Shown: positions 26,585 to 42,177 of the stretch, piece by piece
Layout of the letters: the number at the start of each line of letters is the position of its first letter
How positions within the stretch are numbered: the first letter of the stretch is position 1
Assembly: GCF_002113885.1 (NCBI RefSeq)
Contig: NW_018408079.1
Coordinates: 380,767-444,766 of the forward strand
Length of the DNA stretch: 64,000 nt
Source of the DNA: Mizuhopecten yessoensis
Taxonomy: Eukaryota
Reading direction: 5' to 3'
Program-made: the position numbers and the translations under genes
The notes under the pieces: generated by a model
The model's input: only the letters and a program-made list of their open reading frames with translations
Databases searched by the model: none
What the model was told of the DNA's origin: nothing

Positions 26585-28756
26585 TTACTCTAATCCATCT
26601 TTCTTACGCATTTCTTTGCCATTTAATATAGCCTGTTTGAAAAGCCTGCAATAGAGTGCAATGGCTTGTAATGAGTCATCGTTTCCTGGAACAGGGTAAC
26701 AGATAAGCCTAGGATCAGTGTTGGTGTCCACTATTCCTACGGTAGGAATCAGCATCTTTGCGGTCTCGACAACGGCAGTATGTTGCTCAAACACGCTGTT
26801 TAAAGTACTGAGAAAAATGCAGGTGTCCGGGAGCCGTGTGACGGAGCCAAACTGCTGTGTAGCATTGGTGAAGATTCCTCCCCGCCAGTACCTACAGTGA
26901 CTGTACTCTCCGGCTTCCTCTGCTGTTTTCTCAACAAGGGGTATACTTTGCACATTTCTGCTGATAAACAAAATAACACCTCCCCTGTAGGCTATATGTG
27001 CTAGAAAATTTAATGCCAATTGCATGTGTTCGACTGTCTGTCCAAGATCCAGAATATCCACTCCTATCCTATTACCGTAAATATATGGCGACATGTACTC
27101 ATTACGAACTCCAGTTTTGTGGCCTAAATGAGCACAAGTTTCGAAGAGGTCCTCAACTTTGACCAAGTCTTTCACTTGAAAATAATCATCGTGCGTTAAT
27201 GCATTTTGCAGTTTTCTTTCTGAAAAAAGCAAGAAGTATATACATATACATACCTTTAATTTAAACTTTTAAAAGTAAAACTTCAGCAAAAATTAGAAGT
27301 GTTCATGAACTTATAATTATCATCTGGGAGGCACTTTTTCAGAGGCTCCATCACTAATCTACATGTACATGTATTAAAACAGATTGAAAACAAGGAAGGG
27401 TAGGTCTTCTCCACTATCAGTTTTGACGAAATTGATGGCAGTATGCGAAGTTGGCGGTACAACGGGTGGCGATGCATCAAGATTATACTGTATATAAATA
27501 TACATGCAGGTTACATTGGCATTCAAACATAAGTGATACAAACATTCAGATTTGAAGATTTCTCATTTACCAGCACTTACAAATCCACATGTGTAAGAGG
27601 TGAATTGGTTTATACATTTATAAATGTATAAGTGGTTGGGCAATTGGTTTAAACTCATATATCCATTTATTCTACAAAAATTGATAGTTAGCACACATTA
27701 CAAGGTGATAGTATTAAATAACATTTGGAAAGTTATGATTGTTTTATGTTGCCCACGGCTTTAGAATTAATACAATCTAACCATCAAATAGCATGTTCAC
27801 ATCCTTTCAGGAAAGCTGAATTGATGGGACCCCCAACATAGAGAATAGATTTTTTTATTTCATTGTTATTAATGACATGAAAAATAAACAATTTGACCAT
27901 AAAAGGCCCCTGAATCTATTACTAAAGAGCTAGCTAGGGGTAATTGAATATGAATATGAACCGGAAATCTATGAACATTTTTGTGGATGTTTTTCCTTTC
28001 AATATATAAGATTCATCAGTTTTGAAATATGTTAATATGAAAGTTTTACTTTATAAACAAACAATGTACAGCAACATATTAAACTTGCGGCAACGTTTCA
28101 AGACTGACTAACCCCTTTGTCAAGCTATGGCGTGCAACAGGTTTAATATGTACATTGTCTATAAATTAAAACTTTAATATATTTATTCTTTTCTTTGTTT
28201 TCCATTCCAATCATTCACTCTCGGTCCTTGTGTTATTTGTGTATTAAACTTACCGTGGTTATCTAGATATAGTGTTTCATTCTGCCGGTTTTCCTCGACA
28301 GTTTTGTACTGTATGCTCCTGGTCTGGCAAGTGATTGGAGAGTTACTTGAAAATTCAATCACCCTCCTTCTGACAAGTGTGTGCACTGGACAGCTAGCAG
28401 CATGGATGCCTAGTATTGAAAGAAAATGTTGAAAGTTGCGACAGTACAATGTAGGATACATATAGCAAATCTGGCTATATAACGATACCTGAACAAGGCT
28501 GACAACAGCACCAGCAAATCTGGCTATATAGCTAGATTTGCCGGTGCTCCAGTACCTAAACAAGTTTAATTAGAGTATTATTGTCATCTTATGATCTAAG
28601 CTATAGCGGTGTTTGTTCACACTTCAAACTGAATATATTTGACATTATCAGTCTATTGGTCTTCTGTCCGAAAGAAAAACTTAAAAACGTACTTGATAAT
28701 TTGCGGAAAAGTCCATTTTTAGCAAAAGTCACGACTTTGCCTCTGACCGCAGCCAT
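26585..28756 (-). CDS. MRPS2: Mitochondrial ribosomal protein S2 (uS2m), 284 aa, 3 exons
   Basis: Exons 28756-28693, 28409-28254, 27219-26585 with phase-1 joins. Basic N-terminal presequence MAAVRGKVVTFAKNGLFRKLSS; uS2 motifs AHLGH, YWRGGIFTN, IPTVGIVDTN, YPVPGNDDS. Confidence 0.95.
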
Positions 28757-32857: not shown

Positions 32858-35800
32858 TTACTTTGCCGAGAATGGCATGTCAGAATTCTCCGAACTCTTG
32901 GCCGAAATCCTTTCCAGACACATCGGTCGTTTGTTTTGTGACACGTCCCGTATCAGATTGATGAAAACGCTATATTCATCCGCGTAGTTGTACACGTTAG
33001 CGGACAGTCGGACAAACAGACTGTCAAGGACACAGAACAGCTGTACTTGAATATCGTGTTCATAGAAAAGGTCGTCCATCAATCGGTACGCCTCGGCCTG
33101 TAACAGAAAAAAACATAATCGCAATTAGTTGTCCATCAGGTTAGCAACCCAACATCATTACGGCAGAGACGTATAATATGGTATACGTCTCTGACTACGG
33201 TAAGTCGTCCACAACACAACACTACTGATATAAAACAGATCGTCCCACCTACAACACATTATCACTGATACAAAACAGATCGTCTCACCTACAACACATT
33301 ATCACTGACACAAAACAGATCGTCCCACCTACAACACATTATCACTGATACAAAACAGATCGTCCCTCCTACAACACATTATCACCGATACAAAACAGGT
33401 CGCCTCGCCTACAACACATTATTACTGATACAAAACAGATCGTCTTGCCTACATCATTTTATTACTGATAAAAAGTCAAAACAGATCGTCCAACCTACAA
33501 CACATTATCACCGATACAAAACAGGTCGCCTCGCCTACAACACATTATCACTGATACAAAACAGATCGTCCCCCCTACAACACATTATCACCGATACAAA
33601 ACAGGTCGCCTCGCCTACAACACATTATCACTGACACAAAACAGATCGTCCCACCTACAACACATTATCACTGACACAAAACAGATCGTGCCACCTACAA
33701 CACATTATCACTGACACAAAACAGATCGTCTTGCCTACATCATTTTATTACTGATAAAAAGTCAAAACAGATCGTCCAACCTACAACACATTATCACCGA
33801 TACAAAACAGGTCGCCTCGCCTACAACACATTATTACTGATACAAAACAGATCGTCTTGCCTACATCATTTTATTACTGATAGAAAGTCAAAACAGATCG
33901 TCCAACCTACAACACATTATCACTAATACAGAACAAATCGTCACACCTACAACACATTATCACTGATACAGAACAAATCGTCACACCTACAACACATTAT
34001 CACCGATAAAAACGGGTCGTCTTGCCTACAACACATTATCACTGATACAAAACAGATCGCCTCGCCTACAATACATTATCACTAATACAAAACAGATCGC
34101 CTCGCCTACAACACATTATCACCGATACAAAGCAGGTCGCCTCGCCTACAACACATTATTACTGATACAAAACAGATCATCTTGCCTACATCATTTTATT
34201 ACTGATAAAAAGTCAAAACAGATCGTCCCACCTACAACACATTATCACCGATACAAAACGGGTCATCTTGCCTACAACACATTATCACCGATACAAAACG
34301 GGTCGTCTTGCCTACAACACATTACCACTAATACAAAACAGGACGCCTCGCCTACAACACATTATCACTAATACAAACAGATCGCCCCGCCTACAACACA
34401 TTATTACTGATACAAAACAGGTCGTCTTGCCAACAACACATTATCACTAATACAAACCAGATCGCCTCGCCTACAACACATTACCACTAATACAAAACAG
34501 AGCGCCTCGCCTACAACACATTATCACTAATACAAAACAGTGCGCCTCGCCTACAACACATTACCACTAATACAAAACAGAGCGCCTCGCCTACAGCACA
34601 TTACCACTAATACAAACCAGATCGCCCCACCTACAACACATTATCACTAATACAAAACAGGTCGCTCCGCCTACAACACATTATCACTGATACAAAACAG
34701 ATCGCCTCGCCTACAACACATTATCACTGATACAAAACAGATCACCCCACCAACAACACAGTATCACTAATACAAAACAGGTCGCCTTGCTTACAACACA
34801 TTATCACTGATACAAAACAGGTTGCACTGCCTACAACACAAAATTACAAATGAGGTCGTCTGACCAAAATGCTTTACTGGGGTACTTTTCAAATAACACA
34901 GGTTTTTGAAGTTCCTACAGTAAATTGAATTACATGTGTATGCAACAAATTAAAGTGAGTTTTTTTTTGCGGTGGACGTGTACACGCTTTATCCTGATGC
35001 AGGCGCTATGATCCGATGATATTGCATTAAGCTTTATTCACCTGTGCATACAACTACAGTTCCCAAACATGTACGTACTGTCGTGATGTCATAGCCGTCC
35101 ATTTTCGGCAGCCTGACCATTCTCAAACATGGGGCTTCCATGTCCCGGGGGATGGGAAGTTTATCCGTACCCCATTCCGTCACCATCCGCTCAGTCAGGA
35201 TGTCCAGGAGAGAGGAATTGTGCCCAGTTATTGCAGTCTGGGGAAATATATAACAGAATCATGATATATATGGTCAAACACATATAGAATGTAGGCGAGA
35301 CTGTAATATATACATATTTCCAAACACATACGAAACTTGTACATACAAGTACATTGTGTGTATGAAACATTGGGAAAGGACTAGGGGCGTTAAAGGTCAT
35401 TTCGGCTTCACCGGGGATTATGAATTAAATGTTACATTCGTAATCTGGAATAATTGAAGTATGCAAAATGAAATTAATTCGACAACTGGTCTAGGAGATA
35501 TAGCATCACAAAGAGAGAATTAAACCTGCATTTGTGTGAATATCGTCTGTTATGCGCTATTTGGTTGGAAAATATGCCATTTTGAAGGAAATTAACTGAT
35601 CACTCTTCAATATTTGAAAGCCTCCGCATACAACAAAAAAACATAACGTTTGACATGCTTAAACATTTTTATACCAGTGTTCATTCGCTGAAAGAAATTT
35701 TTATTTGTCACATGCGGAGGCTTTCATTTCTGCATACTCACTGTCCGAAAACATCATATATTGGCTATTTCTGCATAGCAACGCAACTTCGTTGCTATTG

Positions 35801-38800
35801 TAGAGCATCAACAGAGTGTACGCATGTGCATTGGAAAACAATCTGCACCAAGAAAGATAGCCCCAATTAACCAAAATGATGTTTCTAACAGAAAATGGTA
35901 AATTAATTCAAGTTAAATTTTTTACTTTTTATGAGGCCAAAAATAACCCATAATGCCTTATGATGCATAGATTTATTTTCAAATATTTCTAAACACATAC
36001 GAAAATATATCATTTACATGATACATACATGTACGTACGAAAATTATGACAGTAAATTTGGATATAAACGGAACATATGATATATACAAGAATAGGACGC
36101 CATTTTTTCAATTTCACGCTGGTATAAACGCAAATCGGTTACATACATATTCCGACATAGATACCGGTAGCGGGCTTTATGGTAAATATGAATGTAATCG
36201 AATTACGTTCATACCAGCATAAACATTGAAAAAATGCCGTCCAATCATTATTCCCTTGTCTCTTCGATATTGAAGTGTTATGTCGTCATTGCAAATGAGA
36301 TTCCTGTAACAGCCTAGCGTCATCAAAATGTTTGCCTCTGACGGTTGTCTCATATTATTCAAGGCGGCTGATCAAATTGCGTGCATAGGCCTATGAACCC
36401 ATTGTCCTATATAGTAATGATTATTCCGTCTTTGCATGTTGCAGAGTTATCTTCTCTTGAGAGCAGGTATTGATTGTTACGTTATTTGTTTTTGAGAGTA
36501 ACGTCATCAATTTTTGGGAAAACGACGGAATTTTCTCACACAAACCAATGACGTAACAATCAATACCTGCTCTCAAGAGAAGATAACTGTGCAATACGCA
36601 AAGACGGAATAGAGGAACTTGCAGTGGAAGTGTAAATATATACATGTAAATTGTAGGTCAAATGACGTTACATTTTATGTTCAACAAATACACAGCAAAA
36701 TGATATTATAAAGAATAGCTGTTCTCTATCTCATTCAAATTTGACCAATCTTGAAATTCCAAAGAAAACGTCTGTCCATAAACAAGAATTAATAAGTTGA
36801 TTTTTTATATTAAACATACCATTCCTCCAAGGTCATCGTAAAATTGAAGAGCGTCGGGTACAGTTACGTAAGCACAATCGTCACGTGTTCCCTGCATGAA
36901 GAATTCCATCGTGAACTCTTTCAAGTAATACCATGAGGTGACTAGGGGGCGGACCCAGGCGTGATGTTCCTTCCTCACGTAGAGGAGAGCACATCCTCTC
37001 GGTGTATACGCCCACTTGTGTAGATTACCTGTATATTTACAATATCAACATTTAAACGATATCCAGGTACCACACTAACAATACCAATTGCAGGTGATTT
37101 TGAAGTTTATTGTTTGAGCAGTATTTTTTTTTTTACAGAATATGTCGTGTACACTACTTCTCATTCTACCACGTCGGCTATGTACCGCCACTTCATTTCA
37201 TTTCATTTTGTTAATGAATCATGTATGATTAAAAAATAGACGCGCGCGAGCATGTTCTATTGTTTAAAGGTTCCCTCGTATTGTAAACTGGCCTTGAACG
37301 TGTTTGCTTTGTCGTGTGAGGGTACACGTGTGCATGTACTAATCGTTTCCACAAATATCTCTAAAATGACACAAATGAACCACTGGCTACAATGGTCAAT
37401 CAATATAATGTCAGCTGCGTGCGGCATGTTGTTGAATTGGAAACGAGTCATTACGTGACAAATACTAGAACAGCATTTTTTAAATCATTTAACATCTAGA
37501 TAACAATACCTTGGTAGACATAAACACACATCACATCATGACGTGGTGGAATCTACAATCGACATATGTTTGTTCGTTACGTTGGAAATGCTCTCTTTGT
37601 ATTATTTGTCCTAACATTTTCTCAAACTCGAAATATATTATTTAGAAAATAAAAATTAATATATAAAATATTATTAATGCTGATTATTTCTTTAAAATAG
37701 CCCGTTATCAGAAATGCCGTAACCGCTCATGCTTTCACATGAAAAAAGACCAATAGTGAAATATGGTTATATGGACCTAAAACGAGCAGACATATATACA
37801 GAATAGAAAGAAAAGTATAATTTTAAACTATTAAACATTTGACGTTATTCTACAACGTCATGCACTTTATCTGTAGCTCTCGGAGCACTGTGAGCAAGAA
37901 CTAAGCTACTAACCGTTCCTACACACTGAATAACACACTCTTTTCCAAACCAACCTGTATAAAAGTCTGGATCCAGGTCCTTCATATCAATGGGCACCTG
38001 TCCTGGCGCATGCGCACCGTCTATCATAGACATGACATTATGCTCTCGACACACCTGAATGATTTTCTTGATGGGCATGACCACGGCAGTGGAACTTGTG
38101 ATGTGATCTGTGACGGAAATGACATATACGACTTATTCTATATATAGCAACAGTGACCTTGAATTTTGAATATTTAACCTGAAATAAGCCAAAAGCACAA
38201 CACTTTTGACAAGAAAGCCTTGTAGTAAGTTTGCATTTGATTAAGTCAATACAACTCAAGTAAAAGTGTTGACATTTAGTTTTTCTATTTATAGTAACAA
38301 CGACTTTGACCTTGGAACTTTTGATCTGAAAAGCAACATCCAGCATGCATCTTCGGCGAAAATGTAATGCACTATTTTCACTTCATTAACACAAGGGAAC
38401 TTGAGCTATTTGGTGAAAACGAATTCAGACATACAAGCTCGTTATATTATCACATCCACTATTTTGCGCGGGAGTTAAGGAACTTGACCTTGCCTATGAC
38501 CGCCAGGCGCACGTTAGGGTTAGAGGAGAGGAACTGTCGATACTGGTCCACTACGTCATCTTCGTTCTCTATTGGGTATTTAACGCCCATCATGTGGTAC
38601 TTCGCTCCTGAAAATAATGTCATATTCTTCCTTGTAATGTTATGTCAGATCAAAGGCAAAAATGCATTCTTGTGTTTACATTCAAATAGGTAAAATTTCA
38701 CAACAATTAAAATATATTAAGATAAATCATAAAATTTGGGAATGGTAAAGTATCGAGACATTTATTGATAATTCTATCTCTTCAAAACGATTACTTTTAA

Positions 38801-39966
38801 AAGATAAAAATTGATTTCGTTCAAAAAAAACCACAAAGATAAAATACCGTTAATTGATGTTTTCACGTGTTCGCACGTGAACTGAATCGCTGGATACGTG
38901 TTGTCTGTTGCTAGGATACCGTCACCCTCTTTAAGGTTCAGAGACTTCAAAATTGTATTTATCCCTTGGAACAGAAATACGTGAACAATTTTAAAGAATG
39001 GTCGCTGATGACTTTTACAGTAATAGTCTAATGAAATAGCCTATCCCACACACATTCCCTCATTACTATATATATAAGACTTTCCTACATCCTAATACAT
39101 GTACATATTGTACACACACTATATATATAAGACTTTCCTACATCCTAATACATGTACATAATGTACACACACTATATGGGTGACACTTTTCACTATTACA
39201 TTGCTTTAAATGAAGTCATAAATTGAAATAAATATCATACCCAACAACGAAATACACAATGTCAAAGGCAAATACATGTGTCTGGTTGTGTCCACAGTCA
39301 CATTGACGTCTGACCTGTAGTAAACGATAGCCACACATATTTTCAGTGACCTCTGACCTGAGGTAAATTAGTAGCTGGTATCAGTGACCTCTGACATGTA
39401 GTATATTAGAAGTAACATATTTCAGTGACCTCTGACCTTTAGTAACTAAGTATCCCACACAGATTTCACAGTGATTTCTCACCTGTCGTTGCGTTCTGTA
39501 CGAGTACAACATCCTCGGGGTTAGCATTGACAAACATGGCGATAGCGTCCCTTCCGGCCTTCCATTTGCCGAGGTTGTTCCGGCGGAACCAGTCATCTGG
39601 ATGATCGTCCATCTTATCGATGTAGCTAGGAACATGAATGTATAACAATAGCAGATTACAACATGCACTTAATTGATGGTGCAGAGGCTATTATTGAAAT
39701 CACGGAGTTAGAAGTCCGTGGTTAAAAACTTGAAACTATTACGTGTAACGTTCAAAACATCGGTATTTGTATATCTGATGAACACTGATATTATTATGAC
39801 GATGAAAATTTAAATATGAGATTTACCTTTTCTGGACGTCTTTTATTCGCCTCGGTACCATTCCGAACGAACCATGATTAAGAAACATGGACCCTTTCCT
39901 CATGCAGAATTCCTTTTCTCTCAACTCTAGTCCGAATGGAGGCATTGTCATCTCTTCGGAACCCAT
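32858..39966 (-). CDS. PLP-dependent aminotransferase class V C-S lyase (Egt2 hercynylcysteine sulfoxide lyase / L-cysteine desulfhydrase / isopenicillin N epimerase-like), 424 aa, 8 exons
   Basis: Exons 39966-39827, 39625-39483, 38964-38848, 38607-38494, 38107-37955, 37028-36820, 35237-35079, 33097-32858 total 1275 nt in one open frame. Motifs: FLNHGSFG, VQNATTGINT, LAVIDHITS, IDGAHAPGQ, GNLHKW (PLP lysine), QGTRD, RLSANVYN. Confidence 0.9.
33215..34840. repeat. 40-bp minisatellite (~40 copies) in the last intron of the lyase gene
   Basis: CCTACAACACATTATCACTGATACAAAACAGATCG unit, with a recurrent 45-bp variant. Confidence 0.95.
36422..36611. mobile_element. TA-flanked MITE with long TIRs (Tc1/mariner-like)
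   Basis: TATTCCGTCTTTGC..GCAGAGTTATCTTCTCTTG ... CAAGAGAAGATAACT..GCAAAGACGGAATA. Confidence 0.85.
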
Positions 39967-42177
39967 TGTGGGCTAACCTTTAACACAAAACAGTACGGCT
40001 ACGTTTACTATATTGTAGTATATAACTAATCCTTCCTGTCCTCGGATCTGTCCTTTCCCAGTAACCGACAGAGCCGTACGTAATCTGGGCTGCGGGGATA
40101 ACAGGGAGTGATAGTTTACTGTCTCCGATAGCTGGTGGTGGTACATAGTACTCTGATCTTAAGTCACGACATCCCTGTAACACTAGGCAAGCCAACCAGT
40201 GTTAGGTAATTAACGTCGTACGTTATGGGTCAAGGGTTTGTCGCCTGGTGCCAACATTATATATATTGTTATTACGTAAACCATTAGATGGCATCGCTTT
40301 TGGACTAAGTGTGCAGGGTTGAGAACGGATCCCTTACATTTCGATTGGCTTAACAGTTGATTTGTCAGAAAAAGGACCTAGCCTGAACTACACCTATTGC
40401 TAGAATGACAGCCTAATGCACTTCCAAGTCTTCTTTGAGAACTGTACGAATAGTTCTTTCAATTACTCAATATATAGGTAAGATAACTCGATTTTATGTC
40501 CTTTATTCTCATTCTTTTGATGCAATGGTTCTGTACACCCAATATCAATTTAATCGATGATGTACTGTGGGGAGAGAAATGCGAACATTTTTAAAACAAA
40601 GGGGCGTAATTACATGATAATGGGAGGTAACACCAATTTATAAATTTTACCGACACATTTTCAATGCATGTACCAAATAAAGTATGATTCAAATCGGTGG
40701 AGTGCTTTGGTAGGAGTAGTCAAACAATGTTTTTAACTAAGGAACATAACTTCCTTAAATACGGATATAACTTAAACTTTTATGTTTAATCACATCCTCT
40801 CAATGTAAGTGTTATGTGTACCGAGTATCAAGCACAATGGGAAAGATGTGTGTCACATCCTAAAAGTAGGTCACTGTGACCTCTATTTGAACTCTGACCT
40901 TGGCCTCAAGTACTAGAATAATGGTTTCCGCAGCATATCTCAGTCACTCTTCACGGGAAGGCAGTGTATCGCACCCTTTAAATGGGTCATTATATCCCCT
41001 ATATCACCTTTGATATTTCTGAGTCTGAAGCATATATCGGCTTTTGTGATAAGGAATTACATCATGGTCAGGCGGTGTATTTTGTGATGAAATGAGGTTA
41101 ATGAAGTCAACGCGAAACCGTTACACCAAACATTGTTTATCGAGGAACAGATATGAGGGGTGTAGGGGTATCCGTATAAAGTCAACGCTTCGAGATAAAT
41201 CAACGGTTTAACTGCAGTTGATCTTTCAGATAAGTCAAATTAACGTGTTGTTTACTTGTTAATTTAATTTGAGATAATTTGTGTTTTCGCAAACCCAGGC
41301 TTATTTTCGTATTTCGATAGCTTTGCTAATATTGCTTGTAACGCGGCCTCGTTTTGAATATCAGTTCCATGTGCTTGCTGGTGGTGCCCAGGGGATGGTT
41401 GGCATCATTTACTACAAAATGTATACAACATAACCTTTTTTTCACAACATAATCTTAGTTAATTATGATAGTTTATTAATAAGATTGGTAATTTACGTTC
41501 GTTGATCAGGGACGTTTGTCCATAAATCTTTGTACTCGCAAAGATTGATTAGATATGTCGGAAAATTTCGAAATACGGAAGATGCTATATAATTATCATT
41601 GAGCATCAAACCAGACCGGCCATAAATTAAAAGGTCATACGATGAATCAAACCTCCACTGGGTTTTTATCGTATTTAACCTTAAATTTCAAACAGTTTAA
41701 ATTGGATTTAATAGTTTACGTTCTTGAGTAAAATCACCTACTGTAGCAAAGGATCGGGTCCCTGTGTTCCAGAGAACCTGGTTTAAGCCTCAGCTGTTTG
41801 ATGCGGGTTTATGATGTAATTTCTTTTGTTTTATTTATCCTTATGTTTAGAGGCTATTTTATACTCTATTTCATTTTACAGGACATAATCTTGGTACCCC
41901 ACTCTGTTGTAGTTGATAATGCAATGTGCTGTGCTTTAAAAATCATATAAAAAAATGTTTTCCATAAATATTTTAATTTCAACAATCTAACTTAAATTTA
42001 AACAAATTTTGTGACAAAAATGTGGAACAAATGATGCATCATCACACAATATGCAGGCTGTCTGTATCACTCGAACATCTTCATCATTATTAAATAGAGA
42101 CAATGCTGATAAACGTTTGTATAAACAACTTAACACTTTTTAAGTATTTTATCGACAGTAGTTTAAGTAGCCACAGT

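Follow-up and report, generated by a model that had tools for sequence, protein, structure and literature searches.

In marine invertebrates, ovothiols serve as major redox buffers and signalling molecules of eggs, gills and haemocytes, and OvoA is the sole known animal enzyme of the ovothiol pathway. Which animal protein cleaves the sulfoxide made by OvoA? The question is raised by a gene at positions 32858-39966 on the minus strand of a 64,000-nucleotide stretch of the genome of the scallop Mizuhopecten yessoensis (NCBI RefSeq assembly GCF_002113885.1, contig NW_018408079.1, positions 380,767 to 444,766; hereafter the window). The gene encodes an enzyme dependent on pyridoxal phosphate (PLP), and an earlier inspection of the letters (below, the sequence-only reading) had proposed it for the lyase step. 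Our best explanation is that the protein may act as a beta-eliminating C-S lyase, with the OvoA product as its best single candidate substrate. Taken as a whole, this explanation is given a probability of about 0.5.

The step has no accepted animal enzyme. Two papers of 2021 report no OvoB, the bacterial enzyme of this step, in metazoans except hydrozoans (PMC8433421, PMC8623360), in line with the sequence-only reading, which had called the animal step unassigned. The searchable later papers and a 2026 review contain no assignment of an animal OvoB. We found no paper tying the lyase family considered here to ovothiol and no study of this family in bivalves. Given that no animal OvoB has been assigned and no paper makes the link, the ovothiol hypothesis is a legitimate one and apparently new.

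The gene has eight coding exons and encodes 424 amino acids. The exons were found in stop-free frames, and their borders are splice sites chosen so that the reading frame is kept. There are no runs of N within the gene. Exon 1 (39827-39966) begins with the ATG at 39966-39964 and encodes the motif LNHGSFG (residues 29-35); exon 2 (39483-39625) encodes DWFRR and NATT (91-94); exon 3 (38848-38964) contains Tyr118, the equivalent of Y134 of the fungal enzyme Egt2. Exon 4 (38494-38607) has a GC donor. Exon 5 (37955-38107) encodes DHITS (172-176) and DGAH (201-204), and on its own matches PF00266 (31.3 bits, E 1.4e-7) and PDB entries. Exon 6 (36820-37028) encodes NLHKW (224-228), including the PLP lysine K227, and GTRD (269-272), and is followed by exon 7 (35079-35237). 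Exon 8 (32858-33097) encodes RLSANVYN (375-382) with the substrate-carboxylate arginine R375; coding extends to 32861 and the stop codon occupies 32858-32860. Six introns are of the GT-AG type and have polypyrimidine tracts. Intron 4 (38108-38493) is a GC-AG intron with the donor TAG/GCAAGG, a strong context.

Transcription was checked in four RNA runs over 35000-40100. A 1789-nucleotide RNA contig connects exons 1-7 at all six predicted junctions within this region, including the GC-AG intron, and raw reads of two 2026 RNA-seq runs back several of them. The joint of 39827 with 39625 is present in both contigs and reads, the junctions of exons 2, 3, 5 and 6 are confirmed by RNA, and 35237 is joined to 36820. 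The GC-AG joint of 38107 with 38494 (ends CT..GC on the plus strand) was seen in a contig of run X7, and raw reads of X21 and X24 show it too. The junction of intron 7 falls beyond the checked region and rests on the sequence and on identity to a database protein: the model agrees at 424/424 residues with P0152, the M. yessoensis protein named "probable L-cysteine desulfhydrase, chloroplastic" at NCBI. Thus the proposed complete gene of eight exons and 424 amino acids is upheld by its identity to P0152, with six of the seven junctions confirmed by RNA. Runs of at least eight studies contain 22-28% of the words sampled from the locus, which is approximately the share expected of exons and untranslated regions. 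The transcript extends upstream to at least 39979. As 198 nucleotides at the 5' end of the contig are unplaced, a non-coding first exon is likely.

It is virtually certain that this is an intact functional scallop gene for a PLP enzyme. RefSeq already has an annotation of this gene; the new part is the functional proposal. Annotated orthologs exist in Ylistrum (84% identity) and Pecten maximus (82%), and the latter carries the name "hercynylcysteine sulfoxide lyase-like".

The complete protein matches the class-V aminotransferase family PF00266 above the gathering threshold (95.3 bits versus a cut-off of 21.5, E 4.8e-27), and PF00155 at merely 22.6 bits. Single-exon scans with Pfam and NCBIfam gave weak matches in which the class was visible and no subfamily. 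None of the NCBIfam equivalogs was matched at its cut-off; the best was sufS (80.7 bits versus 475), and the EgtE model TIGR04343 scored 46 versus 400. Comparison with solved structures, Foldseek and Atlas neighbours stood in for a reference tree of Egt2, EgtE, LCD, CefD, NFS1, SCLY and KYNU. With phmmer against the PDB, the best solved match is Neurospora crassa Egt2 (PDB 5UTS, 5V12, 5V1X; 135 bits, E 3e-38), followed by LolT (PDB 8DL5, 9AZA; 127-129 bits), C-DES (81), SufS (about 52) and NFS1 (about 40).

An AlphaFold model built with 48 sequences is of high confidence (predicted local distance difference test 93.2, predicted template-modelling score 0.92). It matches many class-V structures with template-modelling (TM) scores of 0.72-0.86. 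LolT and Egt2 lead the Foldseek list together (TM 0.82-0.86, 26-27% identity, E 1e-35); LolT is the top match (TM 0.82-0.89) and Egt2 a joint best (TM 0.84-0.86), and the desulfurases and C-DES trail by nine orders of magnitude (E 1e-26). The Atlas neighbours are plant proteins named "L-cysteine desulfhydrase-like" (TM 0.89), bacterial proteins named "isopenicillin-N epimerase" and a cluster from Mucoromycota. The subfamily motifs NHGS(F/Y)G, NAT, DHI(T/S)S, DGAH, N.HKW, GT.D and R.S...YN are all found in P0152 and are conserved in animal and bacterial members, and every motif listed by the sequence-only reading (LNHGSFG, NATT, DHITS, DGAH, NLHKW, GTRD and RxSxxxYN) is present. Judged by these comparisons, the predicted protein is a fold type I, class V PLP enzyme of the Egt2/LolT/LCD/CefD-like subfamily.

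A desulfurase of the NifS/IscS/SufS type was considered and rejected, with scores far below the cut-offs and no conserved persulfide cysteine loop. NFS1/IscS, SufS and selenocysteine lyase share the Pfam family and the fold, yet they reach only 40-52 bits, TM 0.72-0.76 and 17-20% identity. These enzymes carry a persulfide cysteine, and none is conserved in the clade of the scallop protein. C329, the sole cysteine of the loop that precedes R375, is kept in 12/61 metazoan sequences, and the bacterial sequences have a gap at this position.

The position of LolT level with Egt2 as the best structural match could be taken to mean chemistry other than C-S cleavage on the same scaffold, that is, a CefD-like epimerase or an enzyme forming C-C bonds like LolT or UstD. 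The labels of the bacterial homologs as isopenicillin-N epimerases point the same way; however, these labels are automatic. LolT is a Mannich cyclase that forms a C-C bond in a specialised fungal pathway, that of loline. Nothing points to a loline-like pathway in the scallop, and neither beta-lactam nor loline pathways are known in animals. Moreover, the catalytic Tyr, Arg and Lys set of Egt2 is retained. We consider such chemistry very unlikely.

The active site was compared with that of N. crassa Egt2 (NcEgt2), using the residue roles described in PMC10805701, HMMER alignments and an alignment of 82 sequences. The Schiff-base lysine K247 corresponds to K227 of the scallop protein, Y134, which stacks on PLP, to Y118, and D221, which pairs with the pyridine nitrogen, to D201. 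K227 and D201 are invariant across 48 aligned sequences. The phosphate contacts A106/T107, N244 and H246 correspond to A92/T93, N224 and H226, and T307, which reaches the phosphate from the partner subunit, to T270. The arginine that binds the substrate carboxylate, R438, is R375, and F48, one of the residues binding the histidine part, is kept as F34. The arginine R75 on the substrate helix alpha-3 corresponds to R61, and its equivalent is found in 53/61 metazoan and 3/12 bacterial sequences. The retention of this arginine in animals, and mostly not in bacteria, hints slightly that the animal clade may, as Egt2 does, handle a substrate with an extra carboxylate. On these residues, the chemistry of a beta-eliminating C-S lyase appears reasonably probable. 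The most economical reading of the alignment is that the substrate would be a cysteine conjugate or sulfoxide with an S-substituent unlike that of Egt2.

The protein could also be an L-cysteine or L-cystine desulfhydrase, releasing H2S or persulfide together with pyruvate and ammonia, in sulfide signalling or sulfur mobilisation. This is the function in its NCBI name, given by similarity to plant LCD, although the name is automatic. One Atlas neighbour is "L-cysteine desulfhydrase-like" (TM 0.89), and the cystine lyase C-DES is the next solved relative. The residue Q224 of NcEgt2, a PLP contact, is replaced by H204, and histidine occupies this position in 60/61 metazoan and 12/12 bacterial sequences; the resulting DGAH, as opposed to DGAQ of Egt2, is common to the whole LCD/CefD-like group. 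On the other hand, animals already produce H2S via CBS, CSE and 3-MST, and the conserved metazoan equivalent of R75 suggests a substrate larger than cysteine. On balance, a desulfhydrase seems improbable.

For the preferred beta-eliminating lyase, the following mechanism is proposed. PLP would form a Schiff base with K227 and stack on Y118, and D201, H204, N224, H226 and T93, with T270 from the partner subunit, would keep it in place. The substrate, derived from cysteine, would be bound via R375, which would take its alpha-carboxylate. Removal of the C-alpha proton would be followed by departure of the sulfur substituent through beta-elimination, yielding pyruvate and ammonia together with either a thiol or a sulfenic acid. 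Among possible substrates, the best single candidate would be the 5-histidyl-cysteine sulfoxide made by OvoA. In that case the clade could fill the role that OvoB has in bacteria, having been drawn from another fold class of PLP enzymes.

The reaction proposed here, PLP-dependent loss of the cysteinyl part from 5-histidylcysteine sulfoxide by beta-elimination, is performed by OvoB of Erwinia tasmaniensis (PDB 5Z0Q). OvoB is a class I/II aminotransferase, not class V (PMC8433421), and an OvoB-type neighbour of a bacterial ovoA gene matches PF00155 at 134.9 bits. Thus the scallop protein is at most a functional analogue of OvoB and no member of its family. When a bacterial OvoB-type protein encoded next to ovoA was compared with the scallop genome, a single weak match was found (28% identity over 140 amino acids, C5566:442026-442478), situated in a stop-free frame of 495 amino acids. 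The scallop genome is without a good OvoB homolog. OvoA itself is present on contigs other than that of the window. Its sulfoxide-synthase part lies at C3559:209445-217058 (eight exon matches, sum about 380 bits), and its C-terminal methyltransferase part at C5478:266151-268152; either the gene is split or the assembly is broken.

In a maximum-likelihood tree of 49 sequences, built without reference CefD, LCD and Egt2 proteins, a branch with 100/99 support separates all animal sequences of this type from those of bacteria (the CefD-like proteins included), oomycetes, early fungi and a ciliate. A quick tree of 82 sequences agrees. Within the metazoan clade, the cnidarians take the basal position; the echinoderms, the hemichordates, the gastropods and the bivalves cluster group by group. 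The clade roughly tracks the species tree, and thus it was inherited vertically from an early metazoan. Contamination and recent gene transfer are rejected because the gene has introns, its RNA is spliced and the clade follows the species tree; the earlier claim of a host gene, made from the spliceosomal introns, is confirmed by the RNA splicing and by the metazoan clade.

Named members of the clade were found in bivalves, gastropods, the annelid Owenia, Priapulus, bdelloid rotifers, all five echinoderm classes, three hemichordates, amphioxus, the tunicate Styela, two anthozoans and a scyphozoan; a member from Capitella is known via a preprint. No members from vertebrates, arthropods, nematodes, sponges, placozoans or Hydra were seen in three lists of the top 120 matches and among 20 named representatives; these taxa are not seen among the matches listed, which is not the same as absent. 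Hydra has OvoB fused to OvoA. OvoA has been reported from sponges, placozoans, anthozoans, annelids, molluscs, a brachiopod, echinoderms, hemichordates, amphioxus, Ciona and Callorhinchus, and its loss from nematodes, insects and bony vertebrates (PMC4768315). The two ranges show a broad but imperfect overlap, which includes both big losses but rests on few independent events.

The ovothiol role is plausible because the chemistry of Egt2 is right, OvoA is present, OvoB is missing, and the ancient clade overlaps the range of OvoA. Nevertheless, that this metazoan clade carries out the ovothiol lyase step can be proposed only tentatively from sequence, with the odds on the other side, and that this particular paralog does so is more doubtful. 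The observations that weigh against this role are the following.

Firstly, the animal clade is no nearer to Egt2 than bacterial and early-fungal homologs are. The scallop protein scores 135 bits against NcEgt2, a sea-urchin homolog 131, an Allomyces protein 136 and a cyanobacterial "isopenicillin-N epimerase" 149. By sequence, animal proteins are closest to the scallop protein, and bacterial "isopenicillin-N epimerase-like" proteins come next; full-length identity is 36-41% to animals of other phyla, 33-38% to bacterial homologs and about 27% to Egt2. The bacterial CefD-like and plant LCD-like proteins share the motifs and have Atlas TM scores of 0.84-0.89; the former have tryptophan at the position of F304 of Egt2. 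By these scores, Egt2 is a divergent member of a broad subfamily. Since bacterial and early-fungal homologs are equally near to it, its function is not transferable by orthology. The metazoan clade is apart from the early-fungal sequences in the tree, which was built without Egt2 of Dikarya, and orthology to fungal Egt2 was not found. Egt2 is also somewhat longer (about 470-500 amino acids), and no Egt1-type partner was found next to the EgtD-like genes of the scallop genome. Of the Egt2/LCD/CefD type claimed by the sequence-only reading, the subfamily is supported by phmmer and Foldseek, as is the distinction from NFS1, SCLY and SufS, whereas a specific affinity to Egt2 is not.

Secondly, four residues of NcEgt2 are not matched in the scallop protein. 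H276 and F304, both binding the histidine part, are replaced by W255 and M267, and the exit cysteine C156 by M139; the fourth is the PLP contact Q224.

Thirdly, there is no linkage in bacteria. In 301 Pseudomonadota genomes, 14 with true OvoA were found; together with one cyanobacterial locus this gives 15 loci. None of the 15 contains a CefD/Egt2-like gene beside ovoA, and the one weak candidate was rejected as a PLP decarboxylase. The positive control, a class I/II aminotransferase of the OvoB type, is present in 6/15. Conversely, ovoA was found within 10 kb of CefD-like genes in 0/80 bacterial loci, and the neighbours of these genes are generic (ABC transporter, NYN domain, STAND ATPase, SDR). 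The absence of bacterial linkage is in no conflict with an animal-specific recruitment, but one line of support is gone.

Fourthly, there are possible mismatches in phyletic distribution. Sponges, placozoans and Callorhinchus have reported OvoA, and no named family member was seen from them in the top-120 lists. The co-occurrence with OvoA, which the sequence-only reading had offered as a check, is seen as a broad overlap that takes in the two big losses, and may fail in these three cases.

Finally, the family has many paralogs. The scallop genome contains at least eight family genes of three subtypes. A tandem pair of paralogs, A and B, is located at 385000-395300 of contig C2897 (loci L023, L028). 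The NCBI model presents the pair as one 800-amino-acid protein with two domains (P0382), and a fused 806-amino-acid model (P0001) is present in the representative library; this may be a true fusion or a read-through annotation. In the tree, the window gene groups with its orthologs (100/100), then with the A copy (98/90) and then with the B copy (99/95); by this placement it is one of three scallop-specific co-orthologs. The B copy has altered residues at the PLP site (H31N, F34R, H204N and T270C, giving LNNAARG, DGAN and GCRD). The A copy is without the arginine R61, and the window gene retains the full canonical set.

A cluster of four genes at 781000-855000 of C4067 (loci L024-L026, L029-L031) has DY(I/T)(C/S)C in place of DHITS, and has the Ylistrum ortholog P0226. 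A divergent gene of 11 exons at 305900-316800 of C5589 (loci L027, L032) encodes INHGAFG, DHIPS, SNAHKW and GLHD; its closest match P0360, which stood in for it in the tree, is placed outside the metazoan clade, beside early fungi. Multiple copies were also found in oysters, where they form tandem arrays, in mussels and in urchins, with five genes in Diadema. So many paralogs are more in keeping with a family concerned with detoxification or diet than with one biosynthetic step.

Such a family would consist of broad-specificity beta-lyases for cysteine S-conjugates or sulfoxides, acting on dietary or xenobiotic sulfur compounds in tissue of the excretory or digestive system or the gill, and lacking a dedicated ovothiol role. 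The lineage-specific expansions in scallop, oyster and Diadema are consistent with this, as is the variation of distal substrate-pocket residues among the members. The protonephridia of Capitella larvae are marked by S-formylglutathione hydrolase and by the homolog, a "hercynylcysteine sulfoxide lyase"; they are not an obvious site of ovothiol synthesis. Taken together, the Capitella marker and the expansions fit a biosynthetic lyase no better than one that processes conjugates or detoxifies. Beta-lyases are often promiscuous, and a dedicated enzyme is perhaps unneeded in animals. Moreover, a fungal relative from the same subfamily, the C-S lyase of Lentinula, cleaves flavour-precursor cysteine sulfoxides (PMC11677154); that both it and Egt2 cleave cysteine sulfoxides is also a precedent for the ovothiol reading. 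However, the age of the clade and its good conservation from cnidarians through to chordates suggest that at least one endogenous substrate is conserved as well. A purely detoxifying role is considered unlikely.

One more pathway has to be weighed, since the scallop genome contains a large expansion of EgtD-like exons (Methyltransf_33, PF10017 / TIGR03438). At least 30 matches above the Pfam cut-off are found on 9 contigs, including C3643:1.00-1.23 Mb, C210:0.69-0.86 Mb, C4519, C42, C186 and C5166. An EgtD-like methyltransferase could produce hercynine, OvoA could couple cysteine to it, and the enzyme considered here could cleave the sulfoxide as Egt2 does in the synthesis of ergothioneine. 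OvoA accepts methylated histidines in vitro. No EgtB-like domain or Egt1-type synthase was found adjoining the EgtD-like genes, and the only strong sulfoxide-synthase locus is that of OvoA. Ergothioneine in animals is held to be dietary, and nothing ties the EgtD-like family to the lyase family. The action of OvoA on methylated histidines is mentioned in PMC8433421; no literature was found on EgtD-like genes of this kind in animals. An ergothioneine-type lyase is thus the least probable of the readings considered, with a very slight chance of being correct.

For the preferred reading, a beta-eliminating lyase with the OvoA product as candidate substrate, the points that cut against the ovothiol step are the many paralogs, the altered residues of the substrate pocket, the lack of bacterial linkage and the possible phyletic mismatches.

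Several other features of the locus were observed. An alternative cassette exon of 101 nucleotides is located in intron 6 (35742-35842, minus strand), with splice sites TGCAG/ and /GTGAGT. Its joints, 35237 with 35742 and 35842 with 36820, were seen in contigs of run X1 only. The cassette shifts the frame and leads to a stop after 307 amino acids, with loss of the substrate arginine, and the transcript is probably an unproductive isoform. In the same intron, the region 36368-36709 has an RNA depth thousands-fold above that of the exons, and variant letters and loose ends are frequent there. This region is apparently a transcribed repeat of high copy number, and the reads apparently come from other loci. 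Most of intron 7 is occupied by a minisatellite (33224-34840) with a unit of 40 bp and about 40 copies (83% matches, score 1943). The protein ends in FSAK, which is no type 1 peroxisomal targeting signal, and a peroxisomal tag was rejected; the enzyme is probably cytosolic. Outside the gene, a single-exon open reading frame of 215 amino acids on the minus strand (26585-27232) resembles, as judged by eye only, the mitochondrial ribosomal protein S2.

The ovothiol pathway of animals now has a named candidate for its lyase step, from a concrete, conserved and expressed family whose nearest characterised relative, Egt2, has the right chemistry. If the ovothiol assignment is false, the family would still comprise PLP lyases that are widespread in animals and markedly expanded in bivalves and echinoderms. 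If it is true, replacement by a class-V enzyme would account for the failure of OvoB homology searches in animals other than hydrozoans, as well as for the tendency of the clade to be missing where OvoA is reported lost (bony vertebrates, insects and nematodes). The animal pathway would then be complete, with a non-homologous replacement of one step, and ovothiol could be engineered from animal genes.

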